Positions 2,630-58,819 of a stretch of DNA of 64,000 nucleotides are shown one piece after another; the first letter of the stretch is position 1, and each line of letters opens with the position of its first letter. Source of the stretch: Thecamonas trahens ATCC 50062 (taxonomy: Eukaryota > Protista > Apusomonadida); assembly GCF_000142905.1 (NCBI RefSeq), contig NW_013657625.1, forward strand, positions 97,690 through 161,689. Direction: 5' to 3'. The notes below the pieces were generated by a model that saw only the letters and a program-made list of their open reading frames with translations, was not told where the DNA came from and did no database searches. Position numbers and translations under genes: made by a program.

Positions 2630-5055
2630 ATGTCGTCCAGGGACGAGCTGTTGGCTGCTGGACGGGCAAAGGTACGAAGATTGTGATTGTGATAGAAGTA
2701 GAGGGATGGAGTATGTGTGTGTGGTTGTGGATTTGGTTGTGGCTGTGTGTGCTGGCGAGCTGGAGCCGTGTTACTGGCTGGGCTGGTGATGCAAGGGCCG
2801 CAAGCCGAGCTAGCTGGTGATGCAGGGCCGCAAGCCGAGCTGGAGCTGTCTTGGCGATGCAGGGCCGCAAGCCGAGCTGGAGCTGTCTTGCTGGCCAGCT
2901 TAACTGGCTCTCATCCCCTGCAAGATCTATGCTCGACCAACGCTATCGCTTATCCTCCCCCCCGTCCCCCCCTCCCCCCCCCACACACTTACATCTCAGG
3001 CCTGGCCCTGCCGAGAGACAGTTCAACAGATTGAGGTCAAAGAAGAGTAAGGGCCGTCGTAAGAAGAAGGCACAGGAGCCACCACCCAGTCAACCATCAA
3101 CCGTGGAGCCGACGCCTTCTCCCACCCCCACAACCCCCCCTGTCTCTGCCACCGCACTGAAACCCGCACCTGCACACGCCCCGGCAGCGTTGCCTCCTCC
3201 CACGTCTACTGTCCCCAAGTATGAAGAGGGCAAGTCCGTGAGCACCCGGATCCCGCGGCCCAAGGCGGCCGTCACAGCGCCGATCACCCCGCCCGCCCGC
3301 CCGGCCCACTTGCTACGGGAAGAGACCCCACCGCAGCACTCGCCACAGCCCGAGACGCCGAAGACGCCAGCACGCAAGCCCCCCCCACCAACTACCGCAG
3401 AATCACCAGCAACACGGGTCTTCAACCGCCACGCAGAAGCTATGGCCCGCTTTCAGGAGCACACCCAGGAATCGGCCCGCAAGGCGGCGCAGGCCCGCGA
3501 TCGTGTCGCCGCGTCGTCGGCCCAGGCATTGGCGGTTCGCCACGCCGTCTCTCCAGCCCCACCGGTGCCGGTCGTCCCCGCTCCGACAGCGCCAGCTTCC
3601 GTCGAAATCACTCATTACCTCGAACGGCTCGCCGAGCAAGAAGAGGCCATCATTGCACTCGAGCGCAAGGTTTCTGCCAAAGATGATGAGCTCGCCAATC
3701 AGGCCGAGCGTGTGGCCGAGCTGGAGGCCGACTGCCAGTCGCTGCGCACTGCTGCTGAGGCTGCGCGCGTGGCCAAGGAAGCCGCCGAAGGCGAGCAGGC
3801 CTCGCTGCGAGATGCGCTCCACATGAAGACTTCCGACTATGTCAAGCTCAAGGCCCAGCTGCACGAAAAGTCCATCAAGCTCCAGCAAATGCTCGAAGTT
3901 AACTCGATCACCGCTTCCACTGCAGCTGGAGACTCGCAGGAGGACATCCTCGCCGGCCTGCTCGGCCCCAAGCGTTCAGGCGCGTCGTCAGCCGGCTCGG
4001 CGTCTCCTGCCACCGCCAACTCGCCTCGCTCCGTCTCGTACACCGCAGTCATGGCCTCCAAGGAGACTGGTGCTGCTGCGGATGACCCCCAGCTCCAGGT
4101 TCGCAAGATGTATGAGAAGATGCATGTCTATCGCTCGCAGGTCAACAAGGCTCGCGACGCCAATGCCGCTTTGCAGGCTGAGCTCGACGCTGCCCGCAGC
4201 GACGCTTCGGTCGCCCGCGAGGAGCTAGCCACCATCAAGGCATCACTCCATGCCTCGCTCGAGGACCTCGTCGCCGAGCGTAACCGTCTCGTGAGCGAGC
4301 TTGTGCGAACCCAATCCGCACTCGAGTCAGCTCGCGCTGCCGCTGCCGAGCCCGCTCCAACCCCGACCCCGACCTTGACCCCGACCCCGGCTCCGATTCC
4401 GGTCTCGGTCCCTGCTCCAGAAGCACCGGCCCAGCCTCCCGCTTCAACTTCCGAGCCTCCAGCTCCCACTCCGCCCTCCACCGAACTCCAAGCCATCCGC
4501 GCTCGCCTCGAGGAGACCACGCGCGAGCTTGCCCAGGCCCAGACCCAGGAGGAAGCCCTGGTGATCAAGGTCCAGAAGCTCTCGGCCGATCTCGAGCTTG
4601 TCACTGAAGACCGTGACGCGCTGCTCGGTGCGCTTGAAAAGAACTTGGCCACCATTCAGGCACTCGAGCGCGACAACTCGCAGTTTGCAGAGACTATCAA
4701 CGCCACCGTGGCCATCCGGGCTGCGCCGTCTGGCCCGCCAGCACCACGCTCGTTCTACGATGCCAACCCGGTCCTCCAGCCGCCGCCGCACATCCCAGCC
4801 CGCCACACCCCGCGGCGCAGTGAGACCACGACAGCGACCACATCCGCCTACGCGGGCTCGTACTCGGCCTCGGGATCTGCCTCGGCCGCGGGCTCGATCT
4901 CACCCGCCCATGGTCACGCCCAAGGCCACGTAAGCCCGCATCCGGCACCTCACGCCCAGCCGCCGCGACCGCCATCACCCAAGCCTTTTGTGTTTTCGCT
5001 CCTCTCCTGGTTTACGCCCGCCTCACTCGCCGAAGATCGCCCCACCTTGGAATGA
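2630..5055 (+). CDS. Golgin/GM130-BLISTER-like coiled-coil protein; exons 2630-2671 and 3022-5055
   Basis: Exon 1 is MSSRDELLAAGRAK with donor gtacga; acceptor acag at 3018-3021 gives FNRLRSKKSKG. The LAAGR.K..RLR.KK start resembles golgin/AKAP9/BLISTER N-termini. Pro-rich region followed by long heptad repeats. Confidence 0.65.
2788..2890 (+). repeat. Intronic imperfect tandem repeat, 3 copies of gatgca(a)gggccgcaagccgagct
   Basis: Copies start at about 2788, 2819 and 2856 inside intron 2672-3021. Confidence 0.85.
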
Positions 5056-44783: not shown

Positions 44784-46274
44784 ATGGGCTCCGTTCTACT
44801 AGAAACCACCCTCGGCAACATAGTCGTACGCAACCCCCTTCCCTTTCCTCCCCTCCCCTCCCCCTCCCCCTCTTCCCTCGCCACTCTCTCTTACCACTGC
44901 TCGACATGGACACAGATTGATGTGCATGCCGAAGTTGCACCTGTGGCGAGCTACAACTTTCTCAAGCTGAGCAAAATCAAGTTCTACGTTGGATCGCTGT
45001 TCTTCAACGTGCTCAAGGGCTTTGTGGTTGAGACGGGCGATCCGGTCGGCATCGGCTGTGGCGGCACCTCGGTGTTTGGCCTCTTGGGCAAACCGCCACC
45101 ACTACCGATGGCGGCAAAGATGGCTCCCGCCGCTCCAGCATCTGACGAGGGTGTGGCGCAGGGCCAGGTGCTGGCAGAGTGCGAGGGCGGATCGCAGGTG
45201 CTAGCCGGTATGGATTCGGCGCATCGCTGGTTCGGCGACGAGATCTCCGTCCTGCTTCGGCATGACGCGCGCGGCGCGGTGGCAATGGCCAACAAGGCGC
45301 CCGGTAAGAACGGCTCGCAGTTCTACATTACGCTTGCGGATCGTTCTGCCTCTCTGGACGCGCTCAACGGGAAACACACCGTGTTTGGGCAGGTTGCCGA
45401 AGGCTTTGACGTTCTCGACGCGCTTGACGCCGCCGTTGTCGACGACGCGGGACGGCCGTTCCATAACCTCCGAATCCGCGACACCCATGTGCTTGTCGAT
45501 CCGTTTCCGGACCCACCGGGCCTTGCGGCGCTTGCGCCGGTTGAGCTCCGCTCACCATGGCGCTTCCGTCCCGCCGAGACGGCACTCTTTGGTGACTCGC
45601 GCATCGACGACTCTGAGGCCGAGACGACCGCGCTGGCAGCCGCTGAGGCTGAAGCCGACGCCGAGGGCGAAGACGCTGAAGAGCGCAGGCTTGCCCGCGA
45701 GGCTCGCAAGCGTGCACAAGTCCTCGAGATCATCGGCGATCTGCCGTCGGCCGACGTCGCGCCGCCAGACACCGTCCTGTTTGTTTGCAAGCTCAATCCG
45801 GTGACCCAGGACGACGATCTGCACACCATCTTCTCGCAGTTTGGACCCATTGTCGAGTGCGCCGTCGTCCGCGACCGTGCCACTGGCGACTCACTCTGCT
45901 ACGCCTTTATCGAGTTTGCCACCAAGGACGACTGCGAGCGCGCGTACTTTAAGATGGACAATGCCCTCATCGACGACCGCCGCATCAAGGTTGACTTTTC
46001 ACAGTCGGTCGCCAAGCTCAAGTGGCAGGCGTTCAAGCACCAGCAGGGTGGCAGCACCCGCCGCTCTCGCCCGCCTCCCACCGCCCGCCCCCCACCTACC
46101 CGTCTTGAGCACAAGCGCTCGCGCTCTCGCTCGCGCTCGCGCTCGCCACCCCGCCACCGCTCTACGTCTTCGTCCCACGATCATCGCCGGCGACGTCACC
46201 GCCATGGTCACCGCCACCGCCACCGCCATGGTCATGGCCACCGCCACCGCCACCGCCACCGCCACCGTGACTAG
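44784..46274 (+). CDS. PPIL4: Cyclophilin-RRM protein (PPIL4/Cyp59/Rct1); exons 44784-44825 and 44916-46274
   Basis: SVLLETTLGNIV-IDV, NFLKL.K, GSQFYITL, GKHTVFGQVAEG, VLFVCKLNPVT..YAFIEF..MDNALIDDRRIKVDFSQSV, RS/RH tail. 90-nt intron gtacgc...acag. Confidence 0.93.
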   Translation: MGSVLLETTLGNIVVRNPLPFPPLPSPSPSSLATLSYHCSTWTQIDVHAEVAPVASYNFLKLSKIKFYVGSLFFNVLKGFVVETGDPVGIGCGGTSVFGLLGKPPPLPMAAKMAPAAPASDEGVAQGQVLAECEGGSQVLAGMDSAHRWFGDEISVLLRHDARGAVAMANKAPGKNGSQFYITLADRSASLDALNGKHTVFGQVAEGFDVLDALDAAVVDDAGRPFHNLRIRDTHVLVDPFPDPPGLAALAPVELRSPWRFRPAETALFGDSRIDDSEAETTALAAAEAEADAEGEDAEERRLAREARKRAQVLEIIGDLPSADVAPPDTVLFVCKLNPVTQDDDLHTIFSQFGPIVECAVVRDRATGDSLCYAFIEFATKDDCERAYFKMDNALIDDRRIKVDFSQSVAKLKWQAFKHQQGGSTRRSRPPPTARPPPTRLEHKRSRSRSRSRSPPRHRSTSSSHDHRRRRHRHGHRHRHRHGHGHRHRHRHRHRD

Positions 46275-47982
46275 TCGGTCGCGCCAACCAGCGAGCTTGC
46301 GCCGTGCGCAACTGGACACCGGCGCCAGTCGATGGGAAGGTCGACGCCCGTCCATTCGCCGGCAGTCACCTTTGCGTCGACAGCAGCAAACCGTGCACGC
46401 CAGGCCTCGCGCTCGCGCGCTACGTCTGCCTGCAAGCTGGCAAAGGCAGCGGCCAGTTTGGACTGCGGCCGCGAGGCGGTGAGCGTCGCCACGTCGCGGA
46501 AAAGCGCAAGCAGCTGAGCCCATGCCTTTTCCAGCTGGGCCACCCGCTCCGGCCAGTAGGCCAGCCCGCGCTGGAGCTTGTGGTGCGTTGCGCCGTGCCA
46601 CCAGTACTGGCGGATCCACTCAAACTCCAAGACCAGAAACGACTCGCAGAGCAGGTCCCAAGTCGAGCCCGGTCGCGGAAGCAGCGCCCGCAGCGCCGCC
46701 GGCGACTTGGTCAGCTTCTTGGCCTTGCGAACCGCCCGGGTCAGCCGTGGAAAGACTCGGTCGAAGTGGTTGTGCTCGGTCGTGGTCACTCGATGTGTCG
46801 ACGAGTACCGGTGCGACGAGCCGCAGACCACGACGTGCTGGTGGTGGTGGTTAAAGTCGCCGAGGAGAAAGTACATCGCGCCGTGGTCGAGCGGGAGCGC
46901 CAGCTTGGGCGTCACCTCGTCGTAGATGACCCTTAAGCCGACGTGCCACGGCGCAGTCTCGTTCTCGGCCGTCAGCTGGTACACCCCGATCGTCGACCAG
47001 TCCTCCAGCGATGTGTCCTGGTGCCACGAGACGACGGCGCGCCCAAGGCCCTCAAACGGTGGTGGCTTGCCCTCGCCCTCGCCTGTCAGCACGTCCATGT
47101 CGTTGATGAGGGTGAGATTGAACAACGTCGAGCCGGGTGTACCTGCTGCTTCCAGATGCGCATTGCCCTTGGCAATCATGACCTCGTTGAGCTCGCGGAT
47201 GGCGCCCAGTGCGCCTGCAACCGCGGCATCGGCAGCCTCGAGCGCCGGCCCAGCCCACGGCACTGCAAACACCCGTGCGTTGAGGTACTTGTATGTCATT
47301 CCCGGCTCGCCCACCACCACTCGCCGCACATACGTCGGCCCCAGCTCTTCGATTTTGCCCGGCTGCACAAAGTCGAACTTGAACCACCCGCGGGCTTTGA
47401 GCACCTTCATCGCCGCGTGGAACTTGGCGTGGTCGCTCGCCGCCAGCGAGCTTGCCCCGTCCTCGATCACCGCTCCGGCATAGCTTGTCGCCATCAGCTT
47501 CTCCACAAGCTTAGGATGCGAGCTCGGTGTGCAGAAGAGCGGTCGTGGCGACGGCAGTGCCTCGATCGGATACGGCTTGGGCCGTATCGACGTCATCGCC
47601 ACACCAGCCCCAGCGCCATTGCCAGATGAAGATGCAGCGTCGCCTCCGACCTGCTCGTTGCCCCACCCCGCTTTTGCTTCTTCGTCTTCTTGCTGTTGCT
47701 CTTGCCATCGCTTCCACATCGCTTATCCCTCGCATCGCCGATGCCATCACCATTGCTGTCCCTCTTGCGCTTCCGTGCCCGCTTGCCGCTCTCAGCGCCT
47801 CGCCCATCCTGCCCACTGCTGCCAGTCAGCGTCTCCTTGCCCTTGCCCTTGCCCTTGCCCTTGCCCTTGCCCTTGCCCTTGCTCTTATTCTTGCCCTTGC
47901 CCTTGTCCTTGCTCTTCCCAGCTTCATCTTTGCTCTTTCCCGAGCCCAGTAGCTCCCGCTGGAGCGCGGCCCAGTTGGACAT
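46271..47982 (-). CDS. FTO: FTO-like alpha-ketoglutarate-dependent nucleic acid demethylase; probable Lys-rich N-terminus joined by a 1-nt frameshift at ~47661-47669
   Basis: VGEPGMTYKYLNARVFAVPW, FNLTLIN, VSWHQD, WHVGLR..TPKLALPL, HQHVV..RYSSTHRV, EFEWIRQYWWHG match the FTO catalytic and C-terminal domains. Confidence 0.9.
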
Positions 47983-48434
47983 GCCTCGAGTTGAGTCGTA
48001 TCACACCGTCACCGTCGCCAGAACCGAGGATGGACGCTGCGAAATGCCCCAAACTGACCGGGTGTGACTGATGCGGGTGCGACGGGCCACGGCAAAAGGA
48101 CGCACGCCGCAGGGGAGGGATTTCATTTTGTAGCCACATATTGCATCATCCCAGTCATGCCGAGCCGAGCACCATCATCCCCTAATCGACCATCGTTGCT
48201 CTTACCATTATCTACAGCTTCTCCTCCTCCCTCCCCCCCCCTCCACACACACAAACACCCCACACCCTCTCATGGTCATGTTGAACACAGCGATGGCCAT
48301 CAGTATTCTGCCTTGAGGAAGTGAAAGTGGGGTTTTTTTTCCTTGAGCTGAAAACGTTTCTCTACCAGCTTGCCCAGCCCCTTGCGTTGACCCCTAGCAA
48401 AGCCCGCACCACTCGTCTTTACTTGTGTAGAGAC

Positions 48435-48893
48435 ATGGGTCACTCGGCTACTTCTAGCCACAAGTACAATGGTGCCGGTGGGAGGATACGGCGGAGGAGG
48501 AGGAAGCGGAAGCCGGTGGGTGGCGTCGCGGGCGGTCGGCGTGGGTCTCTGGTCGTCGGGCGGTGCGGAGCGAGTGCGCGGTCATTACGGCGGCAGAGGC
48601 TGAGTTGGAGCCAGGAAGAGCAAGAGGAGGAGGGTGACCTCTCCTCGACACTCACGCCTTCGTCTGACATTCTGGAGAAGAACGGGCGTGAGCTCGCAGG
48701 TCTTTTCCCCCCGACATTGGCTCAGCCAGGCAAGGTGCCCTTCTCGGAATTGGAACGAGCGTCCGGGCCTGTCGAGCTGGTTTCAGCCTCGGCTCTCGGC
48801 CATGGCCCGCACTCGGCTTCGACAACCGAGACAGTCACCACAGCGTCATCTACTGCGTCCAGGTCTTCAGCTTCGAGCCTGTCGTCGTCATCG

Positions 48894-48928
<35 letters not shown>

Positions 48929-50885
48929 ATCGTCGTCAGCGCCGACCCGCCGCAAGGTCCACACCTATCGCAGGGTCTCGGTCTCGTCGTCGATGGACGA
49001 GTGGGCAGAGTCGGTAACCAACCAGAATGAGCTTCAGGTGCTGACGCGGCGGCGGGCCAAAGCCAAGACCAAAGTTGCCAAGGCCGCCAAGACATCTTCT
49101 GCCGCGCGGCGTGGCGCCAATGCGGGCGATGGGCAAGCTGCAAGCACAACTGTACCCATTGCTGTCCGCGTGGGGAGCAACTCGGACAACGTGCAGGTCA
49201 TCATGCCGCAGAAGCCGGTCCGTGCCGAGTTTGAAGCCGTCGCCCGGTACCTTTCCGGACCTGGCGCGCGGAGCATCGGATCAGACTCATCGCGAAGCGT
49301 GTTCTGGCGCAAGCTCAAGTCGCGGGCCAAGCGGAAAGCGAGGCGGTCGTCAAACAACGCACTGTTTTCGACGTCTGGCCGGACGTCAAACCTTGACAAC
49401 TCGACCGCATCGGTGGGCTCAGCCACTTCGGCCACCTCGGCTGCTTCGGTCGCGTCGAGCAGTGGCCTCCCGCCGACCTCGTCCCGCGAAGCGCGACTCT
49501 TGCGCAAGTTTGAAAAGAAGGTCGGCAGTGTGGCGTCGCGACGCAAGGAGAAGGCGCGACAGATGGCACGTGGCAAGCTGGCGTCGATCAAGCACAAGAA
49601 AAAGGCGAGCATCGACCCAGCAAAGTACACCATGCCGTGGGGCTCGATCCGTGACTACGACATCAACAAGCGCGCACTTGTCGGCGAGGGCTCGTACGGC
49701 CGTGTCTTCCTCGCCTCGCACAAGTCGTCAAGCGACCTCGTTGTGGCCAAGGAAATCAAGCCGGCCAAGGAGAATCCGGTGCGGCTCAAGCTCGAGGTCA
49801 TGATTCTAGAGGCGCTGGCGGCGGCAGCGCTGGACAAGCCAAAAAAGCCTGGTGCCGACTGCATCGTCGGCCTCAACGACGTCGTGCGCGACACCAAGTC
49901 GGGCACCAAGTACATCATCATGCCGCACGTCAAGTCGCGGGCGTTCCGCAACCTGGCACCGTCGCTCAGCTCGGGCTCGGGCGGGCCGCTTGCTCTCAAG
50001 CACTACCTGTTCTCGCTGGTCAAGGCGCTGGCCTTTGCGCACTCACACGGTATTGTCCACCGGGATATCAAGGGTGGCAACACACTGTACGACCCCAAGA
50101 CTGGCAAGTTTGGCCTTATCGACTGGGGCTTTGCTACCTGGTACTCGCCCAAAACCGTCCAGACCTCATTTCCGGGAACCCGCCACTTTAAGGCGCCCGA
50201 GATGTTCCTGCACTACCGCAAGTACGACTACGCCGTCGACATGTGGTCGTTCGGCGTGCTCATGGCCGCCCTCGTCACCGACCGTCCGGCCTTTTTTCCG
50301 GTCGGCCACACCTCGAGCAACTTTTCCCAGATGCTGGCAGTCGTCGCCTTTCTCGGCCTCGATGCCTACGAGGCCTGGCTCGACAAGTACTCGGTCCCCG
50401 ACGACTACCTGCTCAAGTACCATCCGGCCATCTTCCGCGAGCTCGGCTGCTCGGCCTCGCGCATCGCGTGGGCCGACCTTGTCAACGGCGCCAACCGCGC
50501 CTCGGTCTCGCCGCTCGCCCGCGATCTCATCGACCGCCTCGTCATCTTTGACCACGAGGCCCGACTCACTGCTGCCGAGGCTCTCAACCATCCGTTTTTT
50601 GACGACGTCCGCTCCAAGGGCTTCAGCTCCGGCATAACCACCGCCTCAACGCCCACCCTGGTGGCTCCGCCTTCACGTTCCTCGCGCAGGCGCTCCTCTC
50701 GCGCTGCGTCTACCCCTCTCCTCGATGTCAATGTCTCGGACGACATCCACGCGCACCCTCGTAAGCTCACCTCGATCTCGGTCTCGTCGTCCAGCTCGCG
50801 TCCGTCGTCAGCCTCTTCCTCGTCGGCATCCTCCTCCTCCTCCTCATCGTCGCCGTCGTCCTCCTCCTCGTCGTCCTCATCCTAG
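48435..50885 (+). CDS. Divergent casein kinase II alpha-like kinase with long Ser/basic N-terminus
   Basis: GEGSYGRV, VAKEIKP, HRDIKGGN, LIDWGFA, RHFKAPE, YDYAVDMWSFG, RLTAAEALNHPFF; DWG is the CK2 hallmark. Confidence 0.85.
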
Positions 50886-51146
50886 CCTGTTGCCGTGACC
50901 GTGGCTTGTCCTTCCCTTCAATTGGTGGAGAACAAACAGCCGTGCGAGCTCCAAGCAATGAAAGCGTCCCATCACTCAGCGTCCCATCACTCAGCGGACC
51001 CTCCACAGAGCCATTCCATCGCTTCGATAAGGCATCTTTCTTTTCGGTTTTTTCGTCAACCTCAAAACCCCGCTCGCCTTTCAGCCAGCTGCTGGACCCA
51101 AAGGCATCCCCTCACAACCACTTCACGCCCAAGGTCAAACTTGCAC

Positions 51147-54100
51147 ATGAGCGACATTGGAGAGCGCATTGCAGCCCTTGTCGTGCTAAAGGATGCGCTG
51201 CCGGGCTCTGTGGTGGACGGCCAGGTGGCTGATCTGGTAGCCCTGGTGGCAGCAGGCCCGCTGGCAGCAGCAGCAGGCCACCTCAAGGCCATGTTTGATG
51301 CCGGCCTGCTGACTCAGGACGAGCTAGTCGTCCACACTACGGCACTCATGGCAACTGCCTCGCCGCAGGCGACTGCCACGGGAGCGCACGCCTCATCGGT
51401 GCCACTTGCGGACTCGCTCGATCTGCTCATCGAGACTGGAAAGGTGCCGGATGGTACAGACGCTGCCTTTGCTGACATGGCTGCCGCGCTCAAGGCTCTG
51501 GCCGGCGTAGAGACGCTCGATGACGCCACTTGGCTGTTTCTTGCGCCAGATCGGGATGCCAAGCTTGTCACCATGGACATGGCGCTGACAGATGTATTTG
51601 TTGCACTGGGTGATGCACTTGTGGCTGCCGCCCCGGCGGCGGCAGCAGCAGCAGCCGAGGATGCGGCTGCCGCGACGGCGTCGGCCCAGGCCCATTCGCT
51701 CCAGACGCGATCGCTCGGCCTCTCGCAGCGATCAACCAACGAGCTCGATGGTGGCGCCGCTGGCCCGTCGTCACCGCCTGCAAGCGCGCTCTCGATCGGT
51801 GGCGAGACGGCGTCGCCGGACTCGATGGCGTTTATCGGAAGTGTGGCCCTGGCGGCGCCAGGTGCGTCGGCCGACGCTCAGAAGGCCGGCGCATCGGTCA
51901 ACGCGGAACTTGCAGCGCAACTTGGAGTGCCTGATCCAGGCATGCCCGGAATGGCATCGCTCCTGCTGGTGCCCGACGCGCACGACCCGAGTGCGCTCTA
52001 CGCCTACATCCAGGCGCCCGTGGTTGACGACGGGGCGTCGGCGTCGAGCCAGATTGAGCACATTCACGGCGGCTCGAGCAGCGAGGAGCCTGGAACAGGT
52101 GAGCGGCTGGTCATCTCGCTCGACATCTCGTCGTCGATGAACCACGACGAGGCCGGAGTTTACCTCGCGCCAGGCTCGCCGGATCACCCCGCGTCATCGA
52201 TCGCCAAGGCCCGGTCGCTGCTGCCGGATCTCATTGCCGCGTCGCTCCGGTCGGATGTCTCAGTCACAGTTGTTGTGTGGAACCACGACATTGTGCGTGA
52301 GATCGACGTGGCGGCAGCCACTTACCGCGACGCTGCAACTGGCGAGTTTCCGGAGAACCTTGCGGAGCTCGTTGCGCCGCTTGTCTCCGAGAGTGCGTTT
52401 GTGGCCGACGGCGCAACCGATACTGAGATTGCGCTCCACGCCACACTGGCGCGCGCCGGCGGCTTTGCCTCCGCTGGTACCAACAAGGTCACGGTCTGGT
52501 TCCTCACCGACGGCGAGCAGACGTACTACCACAAGAACGGCAAGGTACGGAGCATCAAGAATACGCCGCGGTTCCAGAACCCGATCGACGCCAGCGGGGT
52601 GACCCAGTACCAGCGCGAGGTGCTCGACACGGCGATGCCGAGTGTCGTGGCCATCGGCGAGCGAAAGTGCCAGCTCGAGTTTCACATTTGCCACTTTGGC
52701 GACGCTGATCCTGTCTTCCTCCGCGCACTCCGCGAGAGCGTCGACGGCCACTTTCACGCCTTTACCTCACTCGATGCTATCGCTGATGAGATGGCCATGT
52801 CTGCGGTCTCGACCTCGGGCAGCGTGGCGGTTGTCGCTGGCGCAGACTCGTTCGACATCCCCGTGGCCATCGACGCCACCGCCGGCGTATACTGCGGCCG
52901 GCGTTCGGGTGTACCGCGGTCGCTCATCGGCTTCCTCACCTCGCCGAAGAGCACGACAAAGCCGCTGACGCTCACGCTGCCAACAGGCGAGCCCGTAGCG
53001 CTTCCGTTCTTCCGGCCGACGGTCCTCAGCGCGGCGCAGACCGATGTGCTGAGCAAGGTGCACTCGCTCGAGCCGCGGCTGCGGACAACAATGGATGAGC
53101 TCTCAGGCAATCTGTCTGCTGCTTCGCTCGACGATGCGGCGCAGGCGCTGGCATCTCTGCGGCGGGCGCGCGGCGAGCTTGTGCGCAGCGCCGTGCGGGC
53201 GTTCCGTGATGGTTCGCTTGTGTTTTCATACCTCGAGCGCGTGCTGGAGGCGGTTGGTGCCCACATCGAGGGCATGACACGGACGATCAACCAGTTTCTG
53301 CGGAGCCAGGGTGCCGAGTTTAACGCCAAGGCTGCCGAGGCGACGCAGCTGTTCTCAGCCAAGGAGCAGATGGCGATTGCGGCGTCGGTCGACTCAATGC
53401 GGGTCCGAATTGGGTCGGGCATCCGACAGCGGTGCATGGAGAAGCGGGTGGCACGGCTGGTGGCCGAGGGCGGCTCGCGGGCAGCGCGGGCGCTGGCGCG
53501 GGTGGTGACGGCGACGTGGACCCCGCTCGACGACGGCTCGGCGCTGATCTCGCTCCGCATCATGGAAGGTGGCGCCGCAACAGCAGCAAGGCGCGCGTTT
53601 CTTGCGGCATACGTGGCCAAGCATCCGAATCCCGATGCTACGAGCGTCATGGCCGCGACACGGTGGGACATTGTCGAGTGGACCGAGACGGTGAGCCACG
53701 ACGTGGCGCGGTTCGCGGCGGCGGTGGCCGGGACCGGCATCGGGTCTGTGGGGAGCAACAGCGCCATTCCGCCACACCTCCGTGCGCTTTCGTCAGAGAT
53801 CTCCGCCGTGTTTTCGGCGCCAGGTGTGCCGGCAGCGCGAATCGGCCCGGTCTCTGTTCCGACAGCAGCGGTGTACGATGTGAGCGGCGAGGCCGGAACC
53901 GGCACAGTGTTCACGTACACACCGACCGAGGTCGTGCGGACTGTGGATGTTGAGGCGGCCGTGGACAAGTACGTGGATCCGCTGTCGTGCCTCGACCTGT
54001 TTGATCTCATGAACGAGGGCTCGCTGCCGGCCGCGCTGTACACGGTAGGCTCTGTCGGCTCACCGGGCCTGCTGTACAATGCTAAGGAGTCGCTGACCGT

Positions 54101-56969
54101 GGAGGGCGGTGGACGGCAGCTGACGTCGTTTGACTACTTTCGGCTCTTCTGGCGGATGCAGCACTCGGCGGACGGATCGCGGCAGGTGCTGATGCCTGGT
54201 GCGTTTGAGCCGGCCAACTTTGCGCTGCCGCTTGCGCCGGAGCCGATGTCGGGCGCGGTACTTGTAGCCGTGCTACCGTCCCTGGTGGGCGAGTTTGTGA
54301 CCGGGACGCCGATGGCGCCGCTCTCGGGCGTTGGCGACTTTTACATTCCGTTTGTGGTGTACCACATGAAGCTTGCGCAGCCGACGACGCTCGACTTTGA
54401 GCGGATGCTTGAGGAGCTTGCCACGCTTGCGTGCTGGGTCTACAACCCGCGGACCCAGCCGCGGCCTGTGGACGCACTCGCAGTGGTACAGGGTATGGTG
54501 GACGAGGGACGCATCCGCCGGCGCGACTCGCCGGGACGGCAGCTCCCGCTCAAGGGCTTGATCTACTCGCTGATCTTCAACGATCTTCCGCTCGCGCCGC
54601 GATTCACGGCGCTCTTCAACGAATGCCTGGTCCGGTCGGTGGGCATGCTCCTCGAGACGCCGCAGAAGGCCAAGTACCAGGTTCGCAAGGTCTCGCTTGT
54701 TCCGATCGAGGCCTGGGTCGGCGACGTGGTCTCTGCGCTAGCTCCGGTTGCTCACGCGGAGATTCCGGACATGGACGACGACGGGGTGCCTGTCCGCGCC
54801 ATGGCAACGGTATCAATGCTGGCCGAGTGGATGACTCGCGCCGATGAGACCGGGTTCTCGGGCGAGGCTGTGGCATGGCTGCAGGAGCATCCGGATGCGG
54901 TGAACGTGCTAGCCGGCGCGCTCGAAGCGCTGCTCATCACCTCGGGCGATGCTGGGTTTGGCGTGGGCAAGGCCGGTCGGGATCTGCTGCGGTGGCGCAA
55001 GGTGCTGCGGCTGCTGTGCGCGTGGCATGTTGTTGCGCGCAGCTCGCTGGGCGACGCGCTGGCAGCTTATCGTGCTTTTGCGCACCCGCAGGCGACGCTT
55101 GACGAGATTGCTGCCGGCTTTGCGGACCTGGCGTTCGATGCCTCTGTCGACGGCGCACCGACAATGCTGGCGTCGGCGCTGGGGCTGACGATGGCCAGCG
55201 ACGGCTCGACGATGACAGTGGTGAGCTTTGCCGACGGGGCTGTGAGCGCGAAGAGCTTTGCGCCGGCAGTCGGTAGTGAGATTGTGGACGCAGGCAGGTT
55301 CGAGGTTGTGGCGCTGGTGTGGCGGATGTTTCACACGGTGGCCTCGGCGTGGAGCTGGTCTGTGGAGAGTGCCGAGACGACGCTCTGTGGCCTCCATGAT
55401 GTCGACTACGCGGTGGCGCGGGTCCTGCTCTACCCGGACACGGTGGTTTCCGCGGGGCTGACCCCGGCGCAGACGAGCGTTCTGCTGGCGGTCAAGGCGT
55501 ACAAGCCTGTGTGGCACCGGTACGCGCGGTTTGTGGTGCCGCCGCCAGAGCTTCCGACGGTCCCGGGCTCGTCGACGCGGCTCAAGTCGTCCGAGGGCCA
55601 GTACTCGAATGCCGACAAGCCGCACGTGGCACTCTCGCTGATTGGTGAGATCGACTCGGGCAAGTCGACGACGGCTGGAAACCTGCTGGTGCAGTGCGGC
55701 ATCGTTCCGGAGCAGAGCGTACGCAAGATCGAGCGTGAGGCTGCGGAGATCGGGCGAGGCGACTTCAAGTTTGCGTGGATTACCGACTCGCAGGCGGCTG
55801 AGCGGGCGCGCGGAGTGACAATCGACTGCGCGTTTTGGAAGCTGGAGACGCCAGAGCGGTTCATCACGCTTGTGGATGGGCCTGGGCACCGGTCGTTTCT
55901 CAAGAACGCAGTGATGGGCATGGCGCAAGCGGACCTTGCGCTGCTCGTCGTCGACGCGTCGCCGGGTGCGTTTGAGGCGTCGATCTCGCGCGGTGGGATG
56001 GTACGCGACCACCTGACTGTGGCCAAGTCGATGTCGATGACGCGGCTGGTGGTGGCAATCAACAAGATGGACGCGGCAGGGTACGATGAGGCACGGTTTG
56101 TGGAGGTGGGTAGCGAGCTGGAGCGACTGCTCCGCAAGTCTGGCTTTTCGAAGCGGTCTGTGGCAATGGTCCCGATTGCGGCCTTTGCCGGAGTCAACCT
56201 CTGCGACGAGGCGCGCGACGTCATGCCGTGGTACTACTCGGGCAAGTACGGGTCCGGCCCTACGCTCGTGGCGGCGCTGGACGCGGTGGCGATTCCAGTG
56301 CGCGCTGTGGAGAAGCCGTTCCGGATGGCAATTGCCGAGTCGTTCGTGGTGTCGGGCGTGGGAACAGTGGTCGGCGGGCGGGTACTGTCTGGTAAGATCG
56401 CACCAGGCGACGATCTGGTGGTGGCGCCAATTGACATGCCGACAGCAGTGCGGTCTGTCGAGATGCACCACGTGCAGCTAGCGCAGGGCGTGGCTGGCGA
56501 CATTGTCGGGCTGCACCTGAAGAAGGTGGGTGTGGCGCAGGTCCCGCGCGGGTACGTGGTGGCGGCGGCCAGCAACCCGCCACGGGCTGTGACCTCGTTC
56601 CGGGCGCGTATCGTGGTTGTTGTTCGCCATCCGGGCATGATCAAGGTCGGCTTCAAGCCGACGATGCACATCCACACCGCGCAGGTCCCGGTCCGGATCA
56701 CCGCCATCCACACCATCCTGGACAAGCGGACGTTCGAGGTCATCGACGACTCGCCGAGTGTGCTCAAGGCTGGGCAGGCTGCCGAGGTCACCCTCGAGCC
56801 GACCAAGCTCCTTGTGGCCGAGCCGTTTGCCGACTCGCCGGCGCTGGGCTCCTTTGTCCTCCGCGCCACGTCTTTCCTCTGCGGATCGGGCATCATCCTC
56901 GACGTGACCACTTACGACGGACCGTCGCGAGCGGCGGCATCGTCGTCTTCATCGCGGCGGCGGCGGTGA
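51147..56969 (+). CDS. SHOCT + vWA + unknown helical region + C-terminal EF-1alpha-like translational GTPase (~1940 aa)
   Basis: Single uninterrupted ORF. LKAMFDAGLLTQDE; LDISSSM, GATD, FLTDGE (MIDAS); GEIDSGKST, ERARGVTID, DGPGH, NKMD, SVEMHH, HPG. Confidence 0.88.
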   Translation: MSDIGERIAALVVLKDALPGSVVDGQVADLVALVAAGPLAAAAGHLKAMFDAGLLTQDELVVHTTALMATASPQATATGAHASSVPLADSLDLLIETGKVPDGTDAAFADMAAALKALAGVETLDDATWLFLAPDRDAKLVTMDMALTDVFVALGDALVAAAPAAAAAAAEDAAAATASAQAHSLQTRSLGLSQRSTNELDGGAAGPSSPPASALSIGGETASPDSMAFIGSVALAAPGASADAQKAGASVNAELAAQLGVPDPGMPGMASLLLVPDAHDPSALYAYIQAPVVDDGASASSQIEHIHGGSSSEEPGTGERLVISLDISSSMNHDEAGVYLAPGSPDHPASSIAKARSLLPDLIAASLRSDVSVTVVVWNHDIVREIDVAAATYRDAATGEFPENLAELVAPLVSESAFVADGATDTEIALHATLARAGGFASAGTNKVTVWFLTDGEQTYYHKNGKVRSIKNTPRFQNPIDASGVTQYQREVLDTAMPSVVAIGERKCQLEFHICHFGDADPVFLRALRESVDGHFHAFTSLDAIADEMAMSAVSTSGSVAVVAGADSFDIPVAIDATAGVYCGRRSGVPRSLIGFLTSPKSTTKPLTLTLPTGEPVALPFFRPTVLSAAQTDVLSKVHSLEPRLRTTMDELSGNLSAASLDDAAQALASLRRARGELVRSAVRAFRDGSLVFSYLERVLEAVGAHIEGMTRTINQFLRSQGAEFNAKAAEATQLFSAKEQMAIAASVDSMRVRIGSGIRQRCMEKRVARLVAEGGSRAARALARVVTATWTPLDDGSALISLRIMEGGAATAARRAFLAAYVAKHPNPDATSVMAATRWDIVEWTETVSHDVARFAAAVAGTGIGSVGSNSAIPPHLRALSSEISAVFSAPGVPAARIGPVSVPTAAVYDVSGEAGTGTVFTYTPTEVVRTVDVEAAVDKYVDPLSCLDLFDLMNEGSLPAALYTVGSVGSPGLLYNAKESLTVEGGGRQLTSFDYFRLFWRMQHSADGSRQVLMPGAFEPANFALPLAPEPMSGAVLVAVLPSLVGEFVTGTPMAPLSGVGDFYIPFVVYHMKLAQPTTLDFERMLEELATLACWVYNPRTQPRPVDALAVVQGMVDEGRIRRRDSPGRQLPLKGLIYSLIFNDLPLAPRFTALFNECLVRSVGMLLETPQKAKYQVRKVSLVPIEAWVGDVVSALAPVAHAEIPDMDDDGVPVRAMATVSMLAEWMTRADETGFSGEAVAWLQEHPDAVNVLAGALEALLITSGDAGFGVGKAGRDLLRWRKVLRLLCAWHVVARSSLGDALAAYRAFAHPQATLDEIAAGFADLAFDASVDGAPTMLASALGLTMASDGSTMTVVSFADGAVSAKSFAPAVGSEIVDAGRFEVVALVWRMFHTVASAWSWSVESAETTLCGLHDVDYAVARVLLYPDTVVSAGLTPAQTSVLLAVKAYKPVWHRYARFVVPPPELPTVPGSSTRLKSSEGQYSNADKPHVALSLIGEIDSGKSTTAGNLLVQCGIVPEQSVRKIEREAAEIGRGDFKFAWITDSQAAERARGVTIDCAFWKLETPERFITLVDGPGHRSFLKNAVMGMAQADLALLVVDASPGAFEASISRGGMVRDHLTVAKSMSMTRLVVAINKMDAAGYDEARFVEVGSELERLLRKSGFSKRSVAMVPIAAFAGVNLCDEARDVMPWYYSGKYGSGPTLVAALDAVAIPVRAVEKPFRMAIAESFVVSGVGTVVGGRVLSGKIAPGDDLVVAPIDMPTAVRSVEMHHVQLAQGVAGDIVGLHLKKVGVAQVPRGYVVAAASNPPRAVTSFRARIVVVVRHPGMIKVGFKPTMHIHTAQVPVRITAIHTILDKRTFEVIDDSPSVLKAGQAAEVTLEPTKLLVAEPFADSPALGSFVLRATSFLCGSGIILDVTTYDGPSRAAASSSSSRRRR

Positions 56970-57173: not shown

Positions 57174-58819
57174 ATGGCAGCCTACGATGAGTACTCCAGT
57201 AGGTTGCCAAAGGGGGGGGGGGGGGCTACACAGAAGAACTGCTGGTCGGTGGAGGCTTCGTCTTGGAACACTCGCGAGCGGTCGCTTCGGGAATGGACGG
57301 CGAGGGGTTTTGGGGAGGAGGGGGAAGAGAGGCTGGGGGCAGGGAGAGGCAGGGATGCAGGGGGGCTGACAATGGTGTGGAGGATGGGTGGTATGGGGGA
57401 GTAGGTGAGGTGGAGTTTGAGTTTGAGCTGGAGTCGGACGACGACGGGATTGGAGTGGAGGACGACGATGAGGGCGAGTACGACGAGGCGCCCGAGGTGC
57501 TGGACGCGACCCAGCTGAGTGTAAGGCAGTGGACATTCATGGCCGAGGTGGGCAACCTGCTTGCGATCTCACAGCCGCTGGCCGGGCTGCTCCTGCATCA
57601 CTTTGGGTGGTCGAAAGAGCGACTTCGGGCGCGGTACTTTGAGAACACGGAGGAGGTGCTGGAGAAGGCCGGAGTCAAACTGGAGATGGTGGCCGGATAC
57701 AGTGTACCGGAGGAGTGCGAGATCTGCTGCGACGATGTAGATGCGTCGACGGTGTTTGCACCCAACTGTGGGCATGCCTTCTGCAAGGGGTGCTGGCAGG
57801 ACCATCTTGCGTCGCAGATTGCGCTCGGACCGAGCTGCCTCACGACGCGGTGCATGATGACCGACTGCCCTGTAGCGCTAGACTACGCAGACGTCAAGGC
57901 GTTGGCTGCCGGCGACGACTTTGCCAAGTACGAGAACATGTTTGTCAACTCATTTGTCGACGGCTCCAAGTCGCTGCGGTGGTGTGCAAACCCCACGTCG
58001 TGTGGACGGGCGATCTCGTACACCGGGCCGAAGGTGGGCAAGGTTGTCGAGTGCGGGTGTGGCTTTCTGATGTGCTTTTCGTGTGGCGCCGAGGGCCACG
58101 CGCCAGCCAAGTGTGCTATGGTTCGCGAGTGGAACCTCAAGGCGGCATCCGAGGCCGAGAACACGCGGTGGATCCTGTCTAACTCAAAGCCGTGTCCCAA
58201 GTGCGGGGTCTTTATCGAGAAGAACAAGGGCTGCATGCACATGACGTGCAAGGCGCCGGGGTGCACCCACGAGTGGTGTTGGCTCTGCCGCGGGCCGTGG
58301 ACAGAGCACGGGTCGGAGACCGGCGGGTACTACAAGTGCAATCGGTACGACGAGTCTGCCGCACGCGAGGATGACCTTCAGGCCGCAGCCATCAAGTCGT
58401 CGCACGACCGCTACCTGCACTACTTTAACCGATGGTACAACCACGGCAAGTCGAAGGAGTTTGCCTCGCAGTACGTTGTCGAGATCAAGTCGCGGATGGA
58501 GGAGTACCAGTCGACAACCGGCTGGTCGCCCGAGTTCCTCATGGAGGCTGCTGAGCTCGTCATGGAGTGCCGGCAGGTGCTCAAGTGGACCTATGTCCTC
58601 GCCTTTAACCTCGAGTCGGACTCGGAGCGCAACCTCTTTGAGTTTCTGCAGGAGGATCTCGAGAAGAACACCGAGCGGCTCAACTCGATGACCGAATCGC
58701 CTGTCGATGAGCTCGACCCATCGCAGCTCAAGAACTACACCCGAGTCACCCGCAACTTTCTGCACAAGCTCATTCAAGGCTGCGAGTCTGGACTCACCAT
58801 CGTTGCTGATGTGGAATGA
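57174..58819 (+). CDS. ARIH1: Ariadne-family RBR E3 ubiquitin ligase; exons 57174-57198 and 57405-58819
   Basis: Acidic N-terminus after splicing gtaggt...gctgac...gtag; RING1 CEICC..CGHAFCKGCW; IBR RWCANP..CFSC..H.PAKC; RING2 KPCPKC..IEKNKGCMHMTC..WCWLC; Ariadne domain RYLHYFNRWYNH, LKWTY, LFEFLQEDLE. Confidence 0.93.

Follow-up and report, generated by a model that had tools for sequence, protein, structure and literature searches.

The window analysed here, a stretch of 64,000 nucleotides from the Thecamonas trahens genome (C55:97690-161689; genome size 28.7 Mb), contains a gene in which a vWA domain and a large middle part with a predicted UBR4-like fold are joined to a complete, divergent GTPase of the EF1A type. 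Comparison with homologues established that this gene encodes a real cytosolic protein of 1,940 residues, and that the protein is one of a conserved group of EF1-type GTPases, a subfamily so far without classification whose multi-domain N-terminus is fixed. As to its function, we favour, at a probability of roughly 0.5, a translation- or tRNA-surveillance factor in the style of HBS1, eRF3 and Ski7, whose giant N-terminus would recruit or modify partners. A role as bulk elongation factor is most likely the less probable of these two.

The original prediction had reported one uninterrupted open reading frame of about 1,940 codons at this locus. Indeed, the frame on the plus strand extends from 50895 to 56969 without a stop codon or frameshift, and its first ATG, at 51147, yields a product of 1,940 residues. 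This ATG is a credible start, because the N-terminus of the T. trahens protein aligns with the N-termini of the homologues. The features assigned to the gene are as follows, in window positions and protein residues.

51147-56969, plus strand: complete single-exon coding sequence, 1,940 residues and a stop codon; uninterrupted, colinear with the homologues from N- to C-terminus, and matched by contigs free of insertions and deletions
51159-51329, plus strand: N-terminal SHOCT-like helical motif, residues ~5-61, with LKAMFDAGLLTQDE at 46-59; weak Pfam match, conservation in six of ten members
51330-52094, plus strand: Ala/Ser-rich, poorly conserved linker, residues 62-316; mean identity 9%, predicted local distance difference test score (pLDDT) <50
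52095-52811, plus strand: vWA domain with an intact metal ion-dependent adhesion site (MIDAS; D326-x-S328-x-S330, T424, D455), residues 317-555; fold and conservation
52815-53006, plus strand: beta-sandwich after the vWA domain, residues 557-620; strands at 277-340 of the model
53031-53495, plus strand: long helical, coiled-coil-like region, residues 629-783; helices at 349-503 of the model, pLDDT 70-90
53502-53936, plus strand: variable alpha/beta region, residues 786-930; low pLDDT, mean identity 12%
53976-54476, plus strand: most conserved block, residues 944-1110; in the predicted fold, it falls where UBR4 has the hemiRING and the first helices of UZI
54477-55352, plus strand: predicted helical bundle similar in fold to the UZI subdomain of UBR4 and Ubr1, residues 1111-1402; model and VIA-align
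55353-55616, plus strand: linker of conserved helices leading to the GTPase, residues 1403-1490; L1438, Q1442 and Y1459 invariant
55617-56201, plus strand: EF1A-type G domain, residues 1491-1685; Pfam GTP_EFTU, E 8e-39
55644-55670, 55875-55889 and 56061-56072, plus strand: motifs G1 (GEIDSGKST), G3 (DGPGH) and G4 (NKMD), respectively
56361-56561, plus strand: EF1A domain II with SVEMHH, residues 1739-1805; Pfam GTP_EFTU_D2, E 2e-11
56580-56906, plus strand: EF1A domain III with HPG, residues 1812-1920; GTP-eEF1A_C, E 2e-24, and GTP_EFTU_D3, E 5e-12

Assembled contigs provided the read evidence for the locus. DNA-like contigs, for which the run type is not recorded, cover window positions 51050-55354 and 56331-56623 and display no insertions, deletions or joints. 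One run is possibly RNA, which is a guess, and this run contributed eight short contigs between 52651 and 56556, located to either side of the GTPase boundary. Within the N-terminal linker, an Ala-rich stretch of low complexity (51623-51697) was skipped as a repeat in read mapping, and the contigs seem to be cut there. The conclusion that the T. trahens protein is made from a single transcript rests on the continuous frame, the conserved linker and the full-length single transcripts of homologues.

No vWA-EF1A fusion was known to the original prediction. This did not hold up, as a family with the same architecture is present in public databases under the label 'elongation factor 1-alpha'. A word-indexed search with residues 300-1490 retrieved two full-length relatives, and an exhaustive phmmer search with residues 299-1488 against 1.84 billion representative proteins gave 61 hits, of which 14 had E-values under 1e-30. 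Every long relative from the phmmer search ends in an EF1A module and the order of the parts is colinear throughout; the relative P0006 displays 31% identity over 95% of residues 300-1490. Pelomyxa schiedti has two paralogues (KAH3759243.1 and KAH3765923.1), both annotated merely as elongation factor 1-alpha, while in Mastigella eilhardi and Copromyxa protea the whole architecture is contained in one open reading frame of a single Trinity transcript. The other named members are one MMETSP transcript, a gene of GCA_040384145.1 and several metagenomic contigs. In GCA_040384145.1 (JAWVHD010001133.1; locus L013:3001-8742), gene calling has cut the family member into two neighbouring genes of 1,472 and 414 residues; the cut corresponds to a short gap in the G domain, most likely an intron. 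Annotations may conceal further members that have been split in a similar way. The named hosts are bacterivorous amoebae and flagellates. In the T. trahens genome, the region of the type of residues 299-1488 is single-copy.

At least four homologues (P0011, P0014, P0015 and P0007/P0077) additionally carry a fused 2H phosphoesterase (2_5_RNA_ligase2/LigT), which lies towards the N-terminus or directly ahead of the GTPase. In some of them it occupies the position of the T. trahens linker at residues 62-316. Pfam scans did not find this domain in the T. trahens protein. Giant viruses, which had been suggested as a place to look for the architecture, turned out to be unproductive: a scan of IMG/VR gave stand-alone eEF1A of 433-434 residues and no fused architecture. 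The stand-alone eEF1A proteins on contigs of giant-virus metagenome-assembled genomes (L037:2992-4293, L038:2992-4296 and L039) are nested in the eukaryotic eEF1A clade and have no relationship with the fusion family.

The C-terminal module of the T. trahens protein matched all three EF1A domains in Pfam, and the motifs GEIDSGKST, RGVTID, DGPGH, NKMD, SVEMHH and HPG are present as originally quoted. Its best matches among solved structures were yeast and mammalian eEF1A (384-364 bits), followed by the archaeal protein aEF1A (360-321), HBS1 (270) and eRF3 (231), and it is ~40% identical to the eEF1A of T. trahens itself. The EF-1alpha models of NCBIfam matched the module from end to end, with scores below their cut-offs (412.5 versus 540.1 for TIGR00483, and 423.2 versus 502 for NF008969). 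The P-loop GxxxxGKS, DxPG and NKMD are without variation in the nine family members compared, and eight of ten members, T. trahens among them, keep the catalytic His that follows DxPG. Judged by its sequence, the EF1A-like module is competent to bind GTP.

Other positions set the family apart. The His of the canonical G1 motif GHVDSGKS is kept in none of nine members, as is the Glu of GRVE, and Q125 and H129, which do not vary in eEF1A, aEF1A and EFL, have likewise been lost across the family. The QDxY motif upstream of domain II, the counterpart of the EDVF aminoacyl pocket of EF-Tu, is retained in zero to two of nine members per position. The Glu of VEMHH, the counterpart of the A76-stacking Glu in EF-Tu, is kept in nine out of nine. 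Within domain II, G239, G290 and R303 (barley numbering) are kept in the family and lost in HBS1 and eRF3.

To place the family, a tree of 40 GTPase modules was built with IQ-TREE under LG+C20 with posterior mean site frequencies (PMSF); supports are given as ultrafast bootstrap/Shimodaira-Hasegawa-like approximate likelihood ratio test (SH-aLRT). The intron-containing T. trahens genes (eEF1A on C16, the eRF3-like genes on C51 and C27, and Rad6) were represented by single open-frame pieces, with exons not joined. The family formed a clade at 82/93, or at 99/94 for the eight members without T. trahens, and was excluded from the clades of eEF1A (100/99), aEF1A (97/100), EFL (100/100) and HBS1 plus eRF3 (97/95). 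The backbone of the tree is poorly supported, and the approximately unbiased (AU) test rejects neither HBS1/eRF3 (p 0.53) nor eEF1A (p 0.41) as sister of the family. The proposed affinity with EF1A rather than with HBS1/eRF3 was borne out by the structure-match scores (384 versus 270 and 231 bits), whereas the tree left it undecided. The branches leading to individual modules are long (0.5-1.5). Pairing the T. trahens module with its own eEF1A was 24 log-likelihood units worse (AU p 0.13). A recent origin from T. trahens eEF1A was dropped in view of the homologous N-terminal architecture shared by the members, even though the GTPase alone gave this AU value. Since the N-terminal 1,200 residues common to the members are homologous, the fusion most plausibly arose once.

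The T. trahens genome holds a full complement of related genes. Four copies of EFL were found, three of them clustered on C18 (477765-480860 and 497831-499225) and one at C35:302040-303431. One EFL of this genome has exactly the sequence of the proteins KNC48312/XP_013756138 of T. trahens ATCC 50062, in agreement with the apusomonad source of the window. There is a canonical-type eEF1A split by introns (C16:162266-163489), an HBS1-like open reading frame of 960 residues (C2:581395-582438), an eRF3-like gene (C51:245982-247325) and a second, very long-branched eRF3-like gene (C27:187400-188773); the two eRF3-like genes group at 100/99. Because T. trahens encodes these proteins separately, the fusion gene is not the ordinary orthologue of eEF1A, EFL, HBS1 or eRF3. 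For HBS1 and eRF3, this agrees with the exclusion of the family from their clade and with the original expectation, which had also viewed the module as an EF1A paralogue co-opted within a larger protein. The latter view stands. It was reported previously that T. trahens translates mainly with EFL (PMC3699394).

The N-terminal half was modelled with AlphaFold2 (residues 281-930; alignment of 19 rows). In sequence searches the vWA domain gave a weak signal (Pfam VWA_2, E 0.13), while the model reached a pLDDT of ~90 across residues 317-555 and its fold matched known vWA domains in VIA-align (Z 18.3 and 18.1; root-mean-square deviation (rmsd) 2.5 over 178 residues) and in Foldseek (E 1e-7). Furthermore, the MIDAS residues D326, S328, S330, T424 and D455 are invariant or kept in at least 90% of the members. 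Together these results verified the intact MIDAS that had been read from the sequence. The vWA domain and the sandwich behind it align with ArnB (8s05 and 5a8j) and with 4fx5 over 285-317 residues, in an arrangement as found in ArnB and the Sec23/24 trunk. At the C-terminal end of the vWA domain, a conserved cluster of Cys and His residues lies on two adjacent strands (C508, H513, C515, H516, H535 and H537; 52668-52757). H513 and H537 are invariant in all ten members, and the cluster at residues 508-537 may form an extra metal site.

The SHOCT-like motif proposed for the extreme N-terminus fared less well. Its helices are kept in six of ten aligned members, in agreement with the proposal, whereas the match to Pfam SHOCT (PF09851) stayed below the cut-off (12.4 bits versus 27; E 0.13 in T. 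trahens and 0.011 in the best homologue), so that the assignment is weakly indicated. The coiled-coil-like region at residues 629-783 shows a mean identity of 28% to the homologues. Membrane or trafficking domains were not found in Pfam scans of the T. trahens protein.

The middle of the protein had been described as some 930 residues of unassigned sequence. Its length was correct; its description can now be amended to a predicted UBR4-like fold, an element that is new here and was absent from the original prediction. The AlphaFold2 model of residues 925-1490, made from an alignment of 21 rows, has a predicted template modelling score (pTM) of 0.72 and a pLDDT of 83-92 in a bundle of ~11-12 helices. 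It includes the block at residues 944-1110, whose mean identity to the homologues is 45%, versus 35% for the G domain, and whose invariant positions include DPLS, LPA-LY, FR, PG-F--N-ALP and TG---A-L. When the model was compared with representative structures by VIA-align, the top match was the UBR4 E3 module with UBE2A (8btl_A; Z 11.4), the alignment covering 275 of 354 residues at an rmsd of 5.1 (chain residues 4841-5183 on model positions 27-478). Yeast Ubr1 came second (7mey_A, residues 1222-1645; Z 7.1), above a background of Z 5.0 at rank 3 and Z 3.6 at rank 50. In UBR4, the module is made up of a one-zinc hemiRING (4835-4948), whose C2HC zinc ligands are essential to its activity, and an 11-helix UZI subdomain, a fold that the authors of the UBR4 structure found in UBR1-4 alone (PMC10873205).

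Several results weigh against this assignment. It depends on one AlphaFold2 model from 21 sequences, in which the pLDDT is just 50-70 in the hemiRING-like, beta-containing part, and since the model is mostly helical, its Z of 11 falls in the range that VIA-align flags with caution. A Foldseek search of the middle model against the PDB gave no match at E <= 0.001. When aligned by hhalign to the C-terminus of the T. trahens UBR4 and to a UBR4 profile of 15 sequences, the region reached a probability of 0.1-0.2%. Pfam, searched at E up to 10 with four pieces of the protein and with all ten aligned members, returned nothing for residues 560-1490, including E3_UbLigase_R4 (PF13764), and a feature search of the ESM Atlas was without usable match. 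No Cys is conserved in residues 944-1110, where H1073 is the sole conserved residue of a ligand type, and for this reason a C2HC site of the UBR4 type is absent. As the zinc ligands, the Pfam match and the profile similarity are all missing, we label the middle UBR4-like by fold only: it is predicted to resemble UBR4 and is not a demonstrated E3. It is possibly a zinc-less derivative of the UBR hemiRING-UZI module in the manner of a U-box. A prediction of residues 925-1414 in complex with the T. trahens Rad6/UBE2A orthologue (L016:1429-1929:-), made with ESMFold2 without a family alignment and without controls, scored 0.00 and was not used as evidence for or against binding. T. trahens also has a UBR4/BIG orthologue on C62, ending near 79404 (L012:31-4155), with an open frame of 4,871 residues and an intact CxxC...HxxC hemiRING.

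For a surveillance factor of the kind we favour, the following mode of action can be envisaged. The C-terminal GTPase would dock at the GTPase centre or the A site of the ribosome, or would grip the 3' end of a tRNA, and the binding and hydrolysis of GTP would gate the activity of the N-terminus. Docking on the ribosome or the tRNA end is supported by the combination of a kept A76-stacking Glu and a lost aminoacyl-pocket QDxY. In the N-terminal part, the MIDAS of the vWA domain would hold a protein ligand, the UBR-like module would recruit a partner, possibly a ubiquitin E2, and the fused 2H phosphoesterase would trim RNA ends in some lineages. A more specific and, in our estimate, improbable elaboration, which leans on the predicted fold, is a ubiquitin ligase under the control of a translational GTPase, where reading of the A site or the tRNA end would, by way of GTP hydrolysis, license the zinc-less UBR-like module to ubiquitinate a MIDAS-held substrate. 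If true, such a union of a translational GTPase and an E3 ligase would be without precedent, and the family would represent a new branch of ribosome/tRNA quality control or immunity in Amorphea.

Three findings tell against the surveillance function and its single-protein basis. Firstly, two members have another residue in place of the catalytic His, namely Thr in the Pelomyxa copy P0008 and Asp in the MMETSP transcript P0074. Secondly, EFL also lacks QDxY and is yet thought to carry aminoacyl-tRNA, and because of this the loss of QDxY alone is no proof of lost tRNA delivery. Thirdly, the junction at 55612-55680 is bridged by none of the T. trahens contigs.

Known systems offer partial parallels. 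The design of a C-terminal three-domain EF1A-like GTPase with an N-terminal adaptor is shared with HBS1, eRF3 and Ski7, and a position of the family as sister of HBS1/eRF3 is not rejected in the AU test (p 0.53). It differs from these proteins in lying outside their clade (97/95), in the lower scores of the T. trahens module to HBS1 and eRF3 (270 and 231 bits) than to eEF1A (384 bits), in keeping the domain II residues that they have lost, and in its extension, which is short or disordered in HBS1 and eRF3 and comprises ~1,490 folded residues (vWA and predicted UBR-like) in the fusion family. With eEF1A and EFL, the T. trahens module has in common the three domains, the G1-G4 motifs, SVEMHH and HPG; in contrast, the family stands outside both clades, scores under the EF-1alpha cut-offs, lacks the G1 His and QDxY, and carries those ~1,490 extra residues. 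The predicted fold of residues ~951-1402 is like that of UBR4 and Ubr1 (8btl and 7mey) in that a beta-containing subdomain precedes a helix bundle, but the family has no C2HC zinc ligands, no PF13764 match and no profile similarity, and its likeness to an E3 resides in the predicted fold only. A MIDAS vWA domain followed by a beta-sandwich is also found in ArnB, the Sec23/24 trunk, ITIH and RGLG. Identity to these is 9-17%, and none of them has a GTPase; the plant RGLG ligases do join a vWA domain to an E3-like module. Finally, ASCC1 of the ASC-1/RQT complex is a 2H phosphoesterase protein in ribosome and RNA-damage quality control, and some family members bring together the same theme of a 2H phosphoesterase, a ribosome-type GTPase and a ubiquitin-system-like module. 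The 2H domain is not in the T. trahens protein, and homology with ASCC1 is seen in the 2H fold alone.

Alternatively, the module could be an integrated decoy or sensor, in which an EF1A-like bait is hit by bacterial or viral effectors and the vWA and E3-like parts signal, comparable to the decoys in plant NLR proteins. The hosts eat bacteria and so meet toxins that target EF1A. Legionella Lgt enzymes glucosylate eEF1A at Ser53, and the corresponding GKxSFKxAW region retains its Ser in about half of the homologues. Moreover, the modules evolve fast, as their end branches of 0.5-1.5 indicate, and vWA and SHOCT-like domains are frequent in conflict systems. In T. trahens, however, the Ser53 equivalent is an Asp (GRGDFKFAW), and the identity to the host eEF1A is ~40%, whereas decoys usually stay near their target; because of these two points we regard a decoy as less likely, and altogether as an improbable explanation. 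Strict conservation of the GTP motifs would be needless for a passive bait, the gene is present in one copy per genome without a visible expansion of the family, and the protein to be mimicked would not be the main translation factor of T. trahens, which is EFL (PMC3699394).

A role outside translation, such as moonlighting-type bundling of actin or microtubules, membrane traffic or degradation within a scaffold, appears comparably doubtful. It would suit the match of the vWA domain and sandwich to ArnB and Sec23/24 over ~290 residues and the long coiled coil in the protein, and eEF1A is known to bundle actin (PMC2121097). On the other hand, the strict GTPase motifs and the ribosome-activated His in most members are a better fit to a ribosome-stimulated GTPase, the 2H phosphoesterase in homologues suggests RNA, and the Pfam scans detected no membrane or trafficking domains.

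Still less probable is a working carrier of aminoacyl-tRNA, to which the N-terminus would merely lend a tether or a regulator, for instance in localised translation. Such a carrier would be consistent with eEF1A as the top similarity (384 bits), with the intact three domains and G motifs, with the SVEMHH and HPG kept in T. trahens, with the dispensability of QDxY in EFL, and with a family plus eEF1A clade that the AU test does not reject (p 0.41). Against it, the module scores under the curated EF-1alpha cut-offs, residues invariant in eEF1A, aEF1A and EFL have been lost family-wide (the G1 His, Q125, H129, the GRVE Glu and others), the catalytic His is gone in two members, and the genome is already supplied with four EFL genes and a canonical-type eEF1A. 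An assembly or annotation error, or read-through of two genes, is very improbable and largely refuted: the exact 1,940-residue sequence had no entry in an exact look-up of a collection of 15 billion proteins, neither homology search returned a T. trahens protein from the fusion locus, and the contigs do not span 55612-55680, but the colinear architecture recurs in at least ten clusters from independent genomes and transcriptomes, the frame is continuous over 6 kb without a stop, a conserved linker motif connects the middle to the GTPase, and independent DNA-like contigs match the window over all the parts that they cover.

The fusion gene is flanked upstream by a protein kinase gene (48321-50885) and downstream by a gene for an Ariadne/ARIH1-type RING-between-RING (RBR) ubiquitin ligase (57263-58819, plus strand) with a UBA_ARI1 domain, a RING, two IBR domains and an Ariadne domain. 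A functional link to this ligase was considered and dropped, as the synteny is not kept in two homologous loci. Because these two loci, in other organisms, have unrelated neighbours, the gene context is uninformative. Elsewhere in the window, an open reading frame on the minus strand (46271-47719) encodes the catalytic and the C-terminal domain of FTO in a non-animal protist (FTO_NTD, E 7e-60; FTO_CTD, E 1e-11).

A survey of translational GTPases distinguished 57 subfamilies, with eEF1A, EFL, Hbs1, Ski7, eRF3, eRF3-2, GTPBP1/2, eIF2gamma and SelB in the eukaryotic cytoplasm, and does not mention a vWA-fused lineage (PMC4342817). In that survey, eRF3, HBS1 and EFL are three ancient eukaryotic paralogues of eEF1A, and Ski7 is lineage-restricted. 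In the papers on the dual EF-1alpha/EFL complement of T. trahens, there is no mention of EF-1alpha/eEF1A being fused or extended at its N-terminus (PMC3699394, PMC3938643); an apparent eEF1B-kinase fusion is the sole fusion noted in the latter. A description of the fused family was not found in the full-text literature, the coverage of which is partial, so that this is no proof of novelty. The vWA-EF1A fusion family is apparently undescribed.

With the fusion family, the eEF1A paralogues would gain one more lineage, of patchy distribution. Its architecture joins a ribosome-type GTPase, a MIDAS domain and a module with the predicted shape of the catalytic end of UBR N-degron ligases, together with an RNA-end phosphoesterase in some species. 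If the assignment of the fold is true, the UZI fold would reach beyond the UBR ligases. If the GTPase docks on the ribosome or on tRNA, the family would present a case for the coupling of translation status to the modification of protein or RNA, and it offers a candidate role for the 'extra' divergent EF-1alpha genes in organisms that translate with EFL (PMC3699394).

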